A stretch of 64,000 bases of DNA from Adineta vaga (taxonomy: Eukaryota; Animalia; Rotifera). The translations under genes were made by a program, and so were the position numbers. The stretch lies in the NCBI GenBank assembly GCA_021613535.1, contig CP075496.1, positions 6,262,001 through 6,326,000 of the forward strand, written 5' to 3'. Below, one piece after another: positions 55,350-61,419 of the stretch; positions within the stretch are counted from its first letter, which is position 1, and each line of letters opens with the position of its first letter. The notes under the pieces were generated by a model. That model did not search any database and was not told the origin of the DNA. It worked only from the letters and a program-made list of their open reading frames with translations.

Positions 55350-58300
55350 ATGAACGATTCGGGACGGTATAGATATTCATATTAATTTCAAATAAAAATC
55401 CTCTTTTTTTTGTTTTCGAATTTCTTCTATTCAAGACGTGTGAATAGTATTATTGTTAAAAATTTACCAGCAAATTATAATGCAGTAAAGATTTTTCCAA
55501 AAGAATTCAATTCGTATGATATTTTGTATTTATCTAGAGTCAATTGGAAGAACTTTTCTCTAAATTTGGTCGAATTGTATCTAGTAAAGTTTTACCAAGT
55601 AATCCAAATTTCGATGGTGGTTGTGGGTAAGAAATGTCTAGTAAGAAAGAATATACATATTTTTTGAAATAATAATTTTAGTTTTGTGAACTATGCTGAA
55701 GCAGAAAGTTGTGGAAAAGCTGTGGAAAATATGAATAATTTCGTCATTGATCGTTTTACATTACGTGTTAATCATTCATCAGTAATGCGTTATATTTTCA
55801 TGCATTTAAAATATAAAAGAAAACTGTACGTTTCATTTAGACACGAATGAATGGTGGTAATTCCGATCGATCACAAAATGGATTGTAAGTTTATTGATAT
55901 GATTTTCTATCTAAAAGAAATTTTTACATACGTTTAGACATTTTAATGGTGAATCAACTGATGAACGCAATGGAACATCATCACCTAGTATTCAAAGTCG
56001 ATTTAGTGGTTTTCGACCAGCTAGTACACTATCATCAACAAATGTCACACCATCCAAACAATTTAATACACCATCAAGTACTAATGAATCAGAAACATTG
56101 ATAAATGGTAATAGTAAACCATTATGGAATGGTATGAATGGTACACAACAAAACCTAAAAAGTCCACTTCATACTGGTATACGAACGATAATATTGAGTA
56201 TTGTGGTTTTCAAAGAAAAATACTTTTATTCTTTAGAAACAACAATGACTATTCGTGAACATGATTCATTTGTTACAAATCAAACATATACTGTTTATCT
56301 ATCAAATCTTGAAGTACCTAATATTATATTTGCTGCAACGGTAGAAGATTATGTACATGCTACATTATTAATTACGCAAATGAATAAGCATGAACAATTG
56401 ACAAAAATTCAATCTGATTCTTATAAATCAAAGTAAAGAAAGAAGAAAAAAGAAACTTGATTTTGAAACGAAAGTTATCGAATTTTTTTAACATTTTCAT
56501 AGACCAGTTGTAGGACAATGGTGTGCTGCACTTTTCAATGGAGATTGGTATCGAGCTCGTGTTCTTGAAACAGAAGAAAATCGTGTTCGTGTTCAATACA
56601 TTGATTGGTAAAACAGAAATTTTATTTCGACATTATTTGTTTTTTATATTCTAATTTTCCGAATAGGGGAAATACGGGATGGTGTGATTCAATTTTAGAG
56701 ATTCGACCATTACCAAATGAGTAAGCCTTTACATCACAGATGAATGGAAACAGCATCTTCACTTTATATCCTTATTTAGATATTATAAAGATCCAGTTTT
56801 ATGTGTGAAATGTATTTTGAACGATATACCTACAGATGTAAAACCATCCGATGATCAAACAAATGCCATGCTTGATATACTTGGTATAGAAATCGAACCG
56901 AAAAATTTTATCGTAGTGTTTCTATTTCGATTACTTTTTCTCCATAGTTCTGGATGTTAAACTTGAAATGAAAATATTACGTACTGAAAATGGTATTCCA
57001 CATGTTCAACTTAAACTTGGTGAACGAGATTTAAATTCTGAAATATCCGCAATCTTACCTTTGGCAGCACCAACACCTGTAATGAAAAATGACGTAATAA
57101 TAAAAATAATGTTTCTTTTTGTATTTGTTTTATTTTCAAATAGGCTTCAGAAAATCATGTTCAAGAAGTCATGAATTTCGATTCGAAAAAGCCAGAAATA
57201 TCAACAACAGAAATTCATTCTGTACAATTAACAACTGTTGATACTGAACCTGAATGTTTTCATATTTTATTAATACGAGATTGTCTTCCAACTATTATGA
57301 ATGTACTCAAAGATTGGAATGTTACTAAACAACCATTAACAACACAACCAAAACCAAATACACTCATTTGTGCTCAATATGAAGGTGATGATCTTTGGTA
57401 TCGAGCATGGATTAAAAGTGTTACTGGTATGTAGAAAATTTCCTGTCATTTTTTCTAGTGTGGTACTGGAAATAGTGGTATTATCTCAATTTAGATACCG
57501 GTGTTGATGTTTATTTTGTTGATTTTGGTAATGAAGAAACTGTTTCCTTTGATCGTCTTAGTGAATGTCCAGATATGTTAGGAAATATTCCTTGGCAAAG
57601 TGTACAAATTCGATTAGCGAATATAAAATTAACTGATGATGAACGTTATTTACTTTTACGAGATTTTGAAACGGATCGACTTAATATGAAAATAATTTCT
57701 AAAGATCAAGATAGTTATGTAGTCGAATTAAATCATAATGGCAAATCTCTTAGTGAATATATGCTTGATTTACGAAAAAAGAAAGAACAACCAGTACAAA
57801 AAACACCAGTAATAGAAGAAGTGCGTGAAATCATTCGTTCGAATGCATATAGAATTGAATTGTATTTTTCTAATATTATAGGCACCGAAACAATCCACTG
57901 AATCAGCTTTTCATAAAGTAGAATCAGTACGATCAGTGAAAAACACAGAAACTATTCCACAAGCATTTGATGAAGGTAAGTTCTTAATAGCCAAAGACTG
58001 AAATCATATTTGAAATAATTTCCATTGATTAAGTATGAACTATGAAAGATTTTGATTGCAAAGATTTAGTAGTCGAGTTTTGTAAAAACTAGTTTGACTA
58101 AGACAATGATCTATTTTAGCAAAACGTCCTGTACCATTACCAATTCAACCATTTATCAACGAACCAAAGACATCTGCTTCTACAAATGACAATAAGCATT
58201 TACCAACATCCACAATTTCTTCTACAACACCTTCCAATATCTCAAATACAATCCCGAAAATAGTACCTTCAAATGATCAGACTAATAGTAATTCATCTAA

Positions 58301-58415
58301 TGCTGATTTCATCACTATGATAACTGAACAACGTCGACAAAATCGTCTACTTGAACAAGTTATTGCCGCTATTAATACTACCAATGCACTTCTTACACAA
58401 CTTGTTCAACGTTAA
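55350..58415 (+). CDS. RRM + two extended Tudor domain protein
   Basis: Spliced RRM IIVKNLP...LEELFSKFG...GCGFVNY. Tudor 1 CAALFNGDWYRARV..VQYIDWGN and Tudor 2 CAQYEGDDLWYRAWI..VYFVDFGNEE. Stop at 58415. Confidence 0.8.
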
Positions 58416-58787
58416 AACTAGTTTTTTTATTATTCTATTGATAGGTATCAATACATTCTAATTATACTTGAAAATCTTGTGATCATTTCTTCGTTTTTCA
58501 TATCATGACAGTGTGTTTCTTTCTTCAGTCAGATTTTGATACAAATCTATCCTAGTAACTCATTATTTTGATTTTCTTTTATATTCCTCTTTTTCTCTCT
58601 TGTTGTTGTTGTTTTCTTTTTGTTATGAGAATCATGTATAGTGCAAAAATGATGAACAAAGATTTTCTGTTTGATTTGAATTAGTGAAACATTCCAAAAA
58701 CAAACATAGTAGCTGTTAGAAATAAAAAAAAACAGAATATGAAAAGAAATAAAGTATATATATATCTATGTTTTATAGATCTGTAAA

Positions 58788-60050
58788 ATGAATTCATTAG
58801 TTTATAGAGTACTTCCATCGATCTCAAAACTATTAACAAAAAGTAGGTATTATGGCTAAACTAATAAAAGCATAATCTATCTAATACAATCTTCATTTTA
58901 AAATAGACTTACATTGAGTACTTAAAACAAAATTTGATGAAAGAGTATTCTAGGTAATCGAGCATTTGCATCAACGAAAAATGTGAAACATAATGATAAA
59001 GAAACTTTGGTTATCGGTCATCGTAATCCTGATACAGATGCAATAACAGCAGCTATTGTTTATGCAGATTTTCTCTGTCGAACAAATGTCAAGGCAAAAG
59101 CGTATCGTCTTGGTGATCTGAATAATGAAACAAAATTTATTTTGAAACAGGCAAGTATTAAAGAACCAGACATGTTACCCGATGATATTCCTGATGGAAC
59201 AAATGTTGCTTTAGTAGATCATAATGAAAGTAATAAGATTTCGTTTCAAATCAATCGATTTAGTTTTATTCTTTTTGTTAGGTCAACAATCCATGAAAAA
59301 TCTACATAAAATGCGTATTACTCATGTAATCGATCATCATAAATTGGGTGATTTAACAACATCTGAACCGATTTTTCTTCGTTTCGAACCTGTCGGTTGT
59401 ACTGCAACTATTTTAACTAAATTATATCGTGAACATAATCTTGAGATTGATCAAAAAATGGCTTTCCTACTCACCAGTGCTCTTCTCAGTGATACACTTC
59501 ATTTACGGTAAAGAAAATTATACATTTGTCGATGATCGATAATAATATATTTCATGAAATTTACAGTTCACCAACTACAACAAAAGAAGATCAAAAAGCA
59601 TTAGAATATATTGCTCCACTGGCCAAAATTGATGATGTTAAATCATATGCGAATCAAATGTTTGAAGCTAAAAGTGATTTAAAAGAATTTTCAACGAAAC
59701 AAATTCTTCTTCTCGATTACAAAATCTATACATTTAATAATGAAAAATGGGGAGTAGGAACTGGTGAAACATGTAATATGAATGCAATGCTTGAACGAAA
59801 AGATGATTTACTTAAAGAAATGCAAGAAGAAAAGAAAAGAAGTAAATTAAAAGGCATTCTATTTTCCATTGTTGATATTATCAAAGAAAAGAATATCACA
59901 TTAATTCCAAGTGAATATGAAGAAAAAGTTGTCGAACAAGCATTCAAAGTCGATATTAAACAACATCATCTTGCTGATTTAGGATCAAGAATCAGTCGAA
60001 AAAAGCAAATCATTCCATTGCTTGAAGCCTATTTCCATGGAAAATCTTAA
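58788..60050 (+). CDS. ppaC: Family II Mn-dependent inorganic pyrophosphatase (bacterial PpaC type; DHH + DHHA2) with a mitochondrial presequence-like exon
   Basis: GHRNPDTD, VDHNESQQS, IDHHKLG, EPVGCTATI, SDTL, SPTTT and SRKKQ. Exons 58788-58842, 58954-59229, 59282-59507 and 59567-60050. Confidence 0.92.
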
Positions 60051-60144
60051 TTGAATTTTTATGCTTGAAACTATATCTATCAATTTTTGCTCGTTTTCAT
60101 AATATTATATTACTAGAAATCTATAGTTTTTTTTTCTATTTTAG

Positions 60145-61419
60145 ATGATTTCACGATCAATTCTATTTATTCGATCTTGTGTATTGAAACCATCATTTAT
60201 ATTTCGACATATTCATGTCGGAAAACCGGTGCATCAATCAAATAATCGATCATTTACATTAAAAAAGCGAAATAAAAGAGATAAATTCGACAGTGGTGCT
60301 CTTTTTCTACTCGTATGTTTTTAAAATTAATTCTGTATTCTTTTTTTTGGAGACGATCCTTTTGTTACATATGTTCAGATAATTCCTGTCAGTACATTTG
60401 CCTTAGGTTGTTGGCAAGTGAATCGACGAAAATGGAAAATCGATTTAATTGAAACATTAAAATCACATATACGAGCTGAACCAATATCATTATTAGAAAA
60501 GTTTGTTTTAATATGTAGATAACAATTTGATACGAATTTTTTGTTTTTGTTTTAGTTTAGATCGATTGCCGGAATTAGAATACTATCCAGTTCGTGTACG
60601 AGGTAAATTTGATCATTCACGAGAGATTCTTATTGAACCTCGTTCACGTCTTGATAATCCTGCTCAAGAAAATCGAACTGGCGCAAGACAAGCACCTGCT
60701 TCACAAACACATGGTTCTCATGTAATTACACCATTTAGAGTAGCAAATCGAAAGTAAATTCTTAAAATCGAACTCTTAGTTTCTTTTTGGCTGACAAGAT
60801 AGATTTTTATAGTTACGATATTCTTGTCAATCGTGGTTTTGTTCCATTTGATCTTCGAGATCCATCAACACGAGCTGCTGGTCAGGTAGAATTATGTTTA
60901 TATACAAACAGATGGGTAGATAATCATACATGTCATTTCTTGTCAGATTGAAGATGAACATGAAATTATTGGATTAGTTCGAACAACAGATTATGTAAGT
61001 TATTTTTCCTTGATAACGAATTAGAATAGTATCAAACTATCAAATCATTAGTTAAATGCCATGTGGAATAAGAATGAACCATCGAAAAATATTTGGCGTA
61101 CTCGTGATGTTGCAGAAATGGCTGCTGCAATGAAAACAGCACCTATTTTCATTGACGAAGTCAAAAGTATGAAATCAAATTTTTTTGTTAGTTTAGAAAC
61201 CATGAGAAGAGATAACTACCTTATTCTAGGCACATCTGTTCCTGGTGGTCCAATTGGTGATCAAACAAATGTTCAATTACGTAACGAACATCTTTCGTAT
61301 ATTGCTACCTGGTAATTTAGAATACTATTTAATAAAGATTTTCTATTCTCACTTTATCTTTTAGGTTTTCTCTTTCAGCTCTAACGACTTTTATGTGGCT
61401 TCGTAAATATGTTTTATAA
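60145..61419 (+). CDS. SURF1: SURF1 cytochrome c oxidase assembly factor
   Basis: [42 protein letters not shown] and [16 protein letters not shown]. Multi-exon. Confidence 0.93.

Follow-up and report, generated by a model that had tools for sequence, protein, structure and literature searches.

How does a gene for a bacterial type of inorganic pyrophosphatase come to lie, interrupted by introns, among the genes of an animal, and where in the cell would its product work? The question is raised by a locus at positions 58788-60050 of a 64,000-nucleotide stretch of the genome of the bdelloid rotifer Adineta vaga (contig CP075496.1 of assembly GCA_021613535.1, positions 6,262,001 to 6,326,000; the window hereafter). 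Bdelloids are the best animal example of large-scale acquisition of bacterial genes, and both this acquisition and the later gain of introns are well known; the acquired genes with a traced history are few. A first-pass annotation had read the locus as a bacterial family II pyrophosphatase gene that was domesticated by the rotifer, fitted with a mitochondrial presequence and possibly put in the place of the mitochondrial enzyme PPA2, or beside it. We hypothesize that the gene (the C4 copy of the bdelloid ppaC family) belongs to a PpaC lineage that came from a Deinococcota-related bacterium and diversified at its N-termini, that the N-terminal extension of the C4 protein is mitochondrial and that the gene is co-transcribed with its neighbor SURF1; to this explanation as a whole we assign a probability of roughly 0.6, and its parts are graded separately as they are discussed.

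The C4 copy lies on contig 4 of a 100.8-Mb assembly in six contigs and is a forward-strand gene of four exons (table 1), which sum to 1041 nt, or 346 codons and a stop. All three introns run from GT to AG, as the first-pass annotation had it, and the gene model is corroborated by public data: the spliced product, exon 1 included, is identical to P0164 (NCBI I4U23_019013, Adineta vaga, 346 aa), a protein that surfaced when a word search was started from a Rotaria relative and whose public name is "hypothetical protein I4U23_019013 [Adineta vaga]". The gene is already in the public annotation, as a hypothetical protein. In the searches described below, the exons were used singly and whole-protein steps used P0164, the four exon ranges being concatenated solely for the GC count.

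Table 1. Features of the C4 ppaC gene and its flanks (positions in the window).
Feature	Position	Strand	Description
Block conserved with Rotaria	58766..58780	+	15 nt, pyrimidine-rich, AG at 58777-78, with 9 nt left to the ATG; aligned at the DNA level to Rotaria locus L059
Exon 1	58788..58842	+	Start codon, 18 codons and base 1 of codon 19; basic amphipathic first half of the extension
Intron 1	58843..58953	+	111 nt, GTAGGT..TTCTAG; restricted to the C4 paralogue group, C1 and C3 without an intron here
Exon 2	58954..59229	+	First 47 nt (to 59000) are the rest of the extension, with R-A-F-A; then first half of DHH (GH-NPDTD, DHNE)
Val29 GTG codon	58983..58985	+	Aligned to the ATG start of the C1 paralogue and to GTA in Rotaria; DNA and protein alignments, ORF list
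Intron 2	59230..59281	+	52 nt, phase 1, after DHNE; common to all three A. vaga paralogues and Rotaria
Exon 3	59282..59507	+	Second half of the DHH domain (DHH, SDT motifs)
Intron 3	59508..59566	+	59 nt, phase 2, before SPTTT; common to all paralogues and Rotaria; joint cut +1
Exon 4	59567..60050	+	Linker and DHHA2 domain (SPTTT, AKSDL, SRKKQ); stop TAA at 60048-50
Spacer to SURF1	60051..60144	+	94 nt; AG at 60143-44 is the SURF1 spliced-leader acceptor; SURF1 ATG at 60145

Judged by its sequence, the C4 gene is predicted to encode a complete soluble inorganic pyrophosphatase of family II (PpaC-type, DHH-DHHA2, manganese-type). P0164 scores 354 bits against NF003877, the NCBIfam equivalog model of manganese-dependent inorganic pyrophosphatase (cut-off 283), its residues 35-343 aligning to profile positions 3-307 of 308. 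When the exons are searched one by one, the three large ones match the same model collinearly (profile 3-77, 79-152, and 154-307 of 308), and the two profile positions missing between these matches are missing because the split codons fall exactly there; Pfam likewise places DHH (PF01368) on exons 2 and 3 and DHHA2 (PF02833) on exon 4. P0164 retains the catalytic motifs GH-NPDTD, DHNE, DHH, SDT, SPTTT, AKSDL, and SRKKQ, the complete PpaC set that had been recognized at first reading, and in a protein alignment the catalytic columns show little or no variation among the bdelloid and Deinococcus homologues. From the B. subtilis and S. gordonii enzymes, we take H-x3-D-x-D, DHN, DHH, SDT, AKS, and SRKKQ to be the metal- and substrate-binding residues. 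The CBS-type NCBIfam models stay below their cut-offs against P0164 and match only its flanking catalytic parts, and the predicted enzyme is of the plain PpaC type, without CBS inserts.

A gene of this kind in a rotifer assembly might instead have come from contaminating bacteria, or be a eukaryotic DHH protein of the Prune/PPX1 type inherited vertically, since Prune and PPX1 likewise carry DHH and DHHA2 domains. The distances speak otherwise: E values for P0164 range from 1e-45 to 2.5e-64 against all solved family II pyrophosphatases (over residues 35-338), whereas yeast PPX1 (2QB6) is matched at 8e-09 only, and the equivalog score lies above its cut-off, in agreement with the initial view that the protein is distinct from Prune and Ppx1. 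As for contamination, the gene contains spliceosomal introns, has the base composition of its host (coding GC 31.4%, GC3 16.7%, against 30.7% in the window), stands between host neighbors on a chromosome-scale contig and is syntenic in Rotaria. Introns, host GC, synteny, the distance to PPX1, and the equivalog score together refute both identities, whose probability we put as negligible.

The C4 copy is a functional nuclear gene of A. vaga, with introns that are spliced in RNA contigs. The RNA evidence consists of assembled contigs rather than raw reads. Introns 2 and 3 are precisely absent from the RNA-like contigs of three studies (X1, X13, and X14) and are retained in the DNA-like run X11. 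The junction that joins exon 1 to exon 2 (58842>58954) is found in the X1 contig, and depth arithmetic places it in X14 too (two runs, two studies); its exon 1 side comprises 19 letters, which abut exon 2 at the predicted GT..AG borders, and because 19 letters fall under the 31-letter threshold, we treat the junction as supporting evidence and not as proof. Since the two contigs start only at 58824, they cover neither the ATG (58788) nor the 5' end of the mRNA. The X13 contig begins at 59037, directly after two sites of variation between the runs (59033 and 59036), and the break at 58824 may have a similar origin, in variants and tip clipping near a short 5' end.

These short reaches into exon 1 could also be read as a gene whose mature mRNA does not include it, with the acceptor at 58953 taking a spliced leader and translation starting elsewhere (e.g., at the Val29 GTG), and indeed in the C1 paralogue the corresponding position is an acceptor, with the ATG of C1 after it. 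We consider this highly improbable, since the 19 letters join exon 2 at exact borders in two runs of two studies, exon 2 offers no in-frame ATG from which a protein with the catalytic His/Asp residues could start, and the public annotation includes exon 1. Furthermore, the Rotaria sp. Silwood1 orthologue (P0160, 80% identical to the C4 protein) has an unannotated exon 1 upstream of its annotated start that is equal in length (18 codons and one base), uses the same GTAGGTATT donor, keeps the frame, is identical at 9 of 18 residues and is acid-free. That the first exon splices on in phase, as the first-pass annotation proposed, is thus borne out by the identity to P0164 and the homologous exon in Rotaria. 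Four codons before the ATG at 58788 stands an in-frame TAG (58776-78), and the conserved block in which it falls may be the spliced-leader acceptor of the C4 gene.

Among the best 120 matches listed, the named eukaryotic relatives of the C4 protein are bdelloids only (Adineta vaga, A. ricciae, A. steineri, and five Rotaria species or isolates), in a survey in which most database proteins carried no name and which left out monogonont and acanthocephalan genomes; in UniProt, the Rotaria and other Adineta relatives go by the name "inorganic diphosphatase". The best bacterial matches among those listed are PpaC proteins of Deinococcus and Deinobacterium, with 51-56% identity over 88-90% of the protein. 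In a maximum likelihood tree of 102 sequences (LG+C20+F+G4), the bdelloids form one clade (100/100), which is sister to all sampled Deinococcota together with two metagenomic sequences (P0037 and P0345) at the base of the Deinococcota side (99/83). A reduced tree (45 rows, LG+G4) keeps this sister grouping with weaker support (69/94), and on the same set an AU test rejects the grouping of bdelloids with the next-nearest clade (delta lnL 42, p 0.00026), an alternative of the candidate-phyla/Nanoarchaeia type that was chosen after the tree had been seen. Base composition would separate the AT-rich rotifer sequences from the GC-rich Deinococcus sequences, not join them. A DNA search for related loci, made with AT-rich query stretches, returned 43 loci with one Deinococcales genome among them and served as a named outgroup sample only.

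We describe the donor as Deinococcota-related, rather than as Deinococcus itself, because P0037 and P0345 are basal, support drops to 69/94 in the reduced tree, and the bdelloid clade, which has a long stem (0.32), is sister to Deinococcota and not nested inside. Introns 2 and 3, for their part, predate the paralogue splits because they share position and phase in the three A. vaga copies and Rotaria. The family entered bdelloids once, from a Deinococcota-related bacterium, before the divergence of Adineta and Rotaria and before the paralogue split, and after the transfer it adopted the base composition of the host and gained two introns. The initial interpretation of the locus as a horizontally acquired and domesticated gene therefore stands, on the bdelloid clade beside Deinococcota, the introns, the host GC, the neighbors, and the spliced transcripts. 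A literature search found no paper on the C4 gene, on this bdelloid family or on a plain PpaC in an animal.

The three ppaC copies of A. vaga (C1, C3, and C4) arose by duplication and differ mainly at the N-terminus. The C1 protein (P0163, 317 aa) has 11 residues ahead of the GH motif, an acidic N-terminus and no extension; the C3 protein (P0269, 361 aa) has a hydrophobic, signal-peptide-like start that has been kept in A. ricciae and R. magnacalcarata; and the C4 protein has a basic extension of 34 residues. Additional groups occur in Rotaria: some lack an extension, and one begins with another hydrophobic stretch. An RRM-Tudor gene lies upstream of both the C1 and the C4 copy, a common neighbor that fits the ancient duplication known from bdelloid genomes.

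DNA alignment of these copies suggests how the C4 extension was made. The ATG of C1 stands opposite a GTG in C4 and a GTA in Rotaria (table 1), which makes the GTG of Val29 the likely former start codon of the C4 copy. Both C1 and C4 have an AG acceptor some 30 nt ahead of the aligned codon. We hypothesize that a new upstream exon with its own ATG would have been spliced to this acceptor, that the former 5' leader would then have been read through in frame and become coding, and that the old ATG would have decayed to GTG (GTA in Rotaria); this history of a new exon and a former leader is probably the simplest route to the extension. Two other candidate signs were examined and rejected. Exon 1 and the 5' leader of C1 share L-Y-R-V, a resemblance that might have passed for the trace of a lost presequence; it is due to chance, the DNA alignment placing that leader opposite exon 2. 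The cDNA-like Logan contig L064 of a group A orthologue begins with AGAG, too few letters for a spliced leader to be called.

What the extension does can be approached from its composition. No bacterial or solved homologue aligns to residues 1-34; they contain seven lysines and arginines and have a net charge of +6, with the first acidic residue at position 33 (chance 0.005, given the 15% acidic content of the mature part). The helical hydrophobic moment is maximal in the 18 residues from 6 to 23, at 0.66, a value reached by 0.3% of shuffles, and the extension contains both I-S-K-L-L, a TOM20-type pattern, and R21-A-F-A, an R-3 processing pattern. The acid-free segment with an R-x-F-x-S motif on which the first-pass annotation based its mitochondrial reading is thus present, as residues 1-32 and R-A-F-A-S. 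In Rotaria, the acid-free, amphipathic character is kept while the sequence of the extension diverges faster than the mature part, and fast drift of sequence with conserved character is typical of targeting peptides. A word search with residues 1-40 of P0164, which depends on shared 5-residue words and met a Rotaria model lacking exon 1, returned only P0164 itself. By these features, the extension would act as a mitochondrial matrix presequence, with an amphipathic helix, I-S-K-L-L as the receptor-type pattern and cleavage near R21-A-F-A.

The gene and its extension could, of course, be real and the extension still not be a mitochondrial signal, the protein being cytosolic with a disordered basic tail or bound for another compartment. 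We find this possible if rather unlikely. The extension is Lys-rich rather than Arg-rich, with only 2 Arg, its R-3 motif is not conserved (R-T-C-S stands at the same place in Rotaria), and a family I enzyme is already there with what looks like a classic presequence, so that a need in the matrix is not evident. Against this reading stands an acid-free amphipathic character that is kept across genera while the sequence diverges faster than the mature part, and the extension is obligatory because the old start codon is lost. Other destinations fit less well: a signal peptide is rejected, there being no uninterrupted hydrophobic core like that at the start of the C3 paralogue, as is a PTS2, of which inspection shows no pattern. 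Mitochondrial import of the C4 protein is accordingly the reading toward which we lean, at somewhat better than even odds, and it appears plausible from composition, motifs, conservation in Rotaria, and linkage to SURF1.

This linkage is close. The C4 copy ends 94 nt upstream of the only SURF1 gene of the genome, and SURF1 is a mitochondrial assembly factor; the order RRM-Tudor, ppaC, SURF1 is conserved in Rotaria sp. Silwood1. The spliced X1 and X13 contigs run without a break through the spacer into SURF1, although contigs cannot prove a single transcript, and in X14 a SURF1 contig has the loose end ACTTACCAAG, which is the tail of the bdelloid spliced leader. Followed by GT, that leader has 42 occurrences in the genome and none in the control. 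From the contigs and the leader tail we infer that the C4 gene is co-transcribed with SURF1 and that SURF1 is resolved by spliced-leader trans-splicing.

If the C4 enzyme is imported, it would hydrolyze pyrophosphate in mitochondria alongside a family I enzyme and not instead of it. Family I pyrophosphatase genes (PF00719) are present at three A. vaga loci. In the copy designated C6, another in-frame ATG lies 37 codons upstream and seven bases past an acceptor-like site; read from there, the protein would gain 37 presequence-like residues starting M-F-L-L-R-R-F-F-S-L-S-S; the C3 family I copy has no such extension and is acidic from the start. The suggestion that the family II enzyme may replace PPA2 and serve the rotifer as its sole mitochondrial pyrophosphatase draws on just three family I loci having been found (their expression and localization aside), and it is not supported because the C6 copy has a presequence-like start of its own. 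We regard replacement as decidedly improbable; at most, the C4 enzyme would supplement the family I enzyme in mitochondria.

The bdelloid ppaC family thus offers what few acquired genes do, a traceable history, with a donor lineage identifiable as relatives of Deinococcota, an old transfer and N-termini that diverged afterwards. Its points of wider interest are the Deinococcota-related donor, the paralogue-specific N-termini, and the traceable route to a targeting peptide, which the C4 copy appears to have built from a new exon and a former 5' leader, a concrete and testable way of sending a foreign cytosolic enzyme into an organelle. Should import prove true, an animal mitochondrion would contain a family II pyrophosphatase, of which our literature search found no report; should it prove false, the locus is a clean but ordinary domesticated bacterial gene. 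Deinococcota are tolerant of desiccation and radiation and rich in manganese, and a bolder scenario can be drawn in which a Deinococcus-like manganese-dependent pyrophosphatase was duplicated into the cytosol, the mitochondrial matrix, and the secretory pathway, supplying, in manganese-rich surroundings, orthophosphate released from pyrophosphate for manganese-phosphate protection of the proteome (and hence for desiccation and radiation tolerance in donor and recipient alike), with the matrix copy kept together with SURF1 in a conserved operon of the spliced-leader kind. We think this scenario improbable, and any link of bdelloid ppaC to manganese-phosphate protection is speculation.

Among known systems, the nearest are the PpaC proteins of Deinococcus and Deinobacterium (such as P0272 of D. 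apachensis and P0279 of Deinobacterium chartae), which form the sister clade and share the core length and all catalytic motifs. They start 4 residues before the GH motif and are encoded by intronless, GC-rich genes, whereas the rotifer C4 protein has its 34-residue extension and the gene its three introns and 31% GC. The solved enzymes of S. aureus (4RPA), B. subtilis (1K23), and M. jannaschii (2EB0) are collinear with P0164 over residues 35-338 (E 1e-55 to 1e-64), and P0164 keeps their DHH and DHHA2 signatures, its metal preference and activity being predicted only; unlike the C4 protein, these are cytosolic prokaryotic enzymes without an N-terminal extension. Prune and PPX1 share the domains of the superfamily with the C4 protein but are distant matches and not PpaC equivalogs. 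That family II enzymes are prokaryotic, as the first-pass annotation assumed, is too strong a statement, since CBS-type family II pyrophosphatases have been reported in protists, namely Giardia, diatoms, green algae, and a choanoflagellate (PMC11210485). Those enzymes likewise reside in eukaryotic nuclear genomes but carry regulatory CBS inserts, which the C4 protein does not.

In its proposed role, the C4 enzyme is most like PPA2 and yeast Ppa2, which are soluble pyrophosphatases imported into the matrix by a presequence, yet their fold and family (PF00719) are unrelated to those of the family II enzyme, and they are Mg-dependent. Other bacterial genes acquired by bdelloids are chromosomal and expressed, have gained introns and have ameliorated in base composition. 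The ppaC family differs from these in that its paralogues have diversified with different, sorting-like sequences at their N-termini.

The publicly available family II pyrophosphatase model from Rotaria sp. Silwood1 (P0160) begins at an ATG that lies within the region corresponding to intron 1 in A. vaga and omits the conserved exon 1, which we located at L059:2688-2742. In one group of Rotaria paralogues (P0151, P0153, P0154 and P0155), Asn occupies the position of the otherwise conserved Lys in A-K-S-D-L and the G-x-G-x-x-E-T stretch is altered; catalysis may have been changed or lost. The third A. vaga paralogue (P0269) has a hydrophobic, signal-peptide-like N-terminus that is retained in P0158 of A. 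ricciae and P0155 of R. magnacalcarata. This conserved start suggests that P0269, a family II pyrophosphatase, is either secreted or anchored in a membrane.

Within the separate family I, the copy on contig C6 (L011) has an in-frame upstream ATG that adds 37 presequence-like residues, and a short cytosolic form of the enzyme could be produced via an internal acceptor-like site. Its tandem neighbour (L012) seemingly lacks the first exon.

Across window positions 58455-60536, the sequencing runs carry variants relative to the window at several positions, in mixed combinations, and the DNA-like run carries a 27-nt insertion behind 58556; together, these would fit two alleles that are both expressed. 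Upstream of the pyrophosphatase gene, a low-depth contig from the RNA-like run X14 covers 58629-58730, directly after a strong acceptor (AG 58628-29), and this interval contains short upstream ORFs. The contig bears 54 additional letters with no match anywhere in window 58200-60700.

Coordinates of the loci and sites discussed
Feature	Location	Detail
Rotaria sp. Silwood1 N-terminal region	L059 2688-3050	CAJNOP010000672.1
Third pyrophosphatase paralogue (P0269)	G000:C3:15217280-15218326 (L001 1350-2560)	
Variant sites (examples)	window 59033, 59036, 60069, 60082	runs vs window
Family I pyrophosphatase copy	G000:C6:1999596-2000103 (L011 1809-2327)	minus strand
Tandem neighbour of L011 copy	L012, C6:1993575-1994115	
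Spliced-leader RNA genes (examples)	C1:2551158-2551338; C5:9884354-9925971; C5:10912929-10934589	leader + GT matches
SURF1 region	window 60051-60700	SURF1 ATG at 60145

The A. vaga assembly contains 42 matches to the spliced leader followed by GT, and many of these spliced-leader RNA genes are paired head-to-head, approximately 157 nt apart, the pairs clustering chiefly on contig 5. According to a 2021 paper (PMC7986045), no operons had been reported in rotifers at that time. In A. vaga, 94 nt separate the pyrophosphatase stop from the start of SURF1 (a single-copy gene in this genome, with introns 60313-60378 and 60501-60555 spliced out); spliced RNA contigs from two runs cross this spacer, and in a third run the spliced-leader tail ACTTACCAAG is attached at AG 60143-44, directly 5' of the SURF1 ATG.
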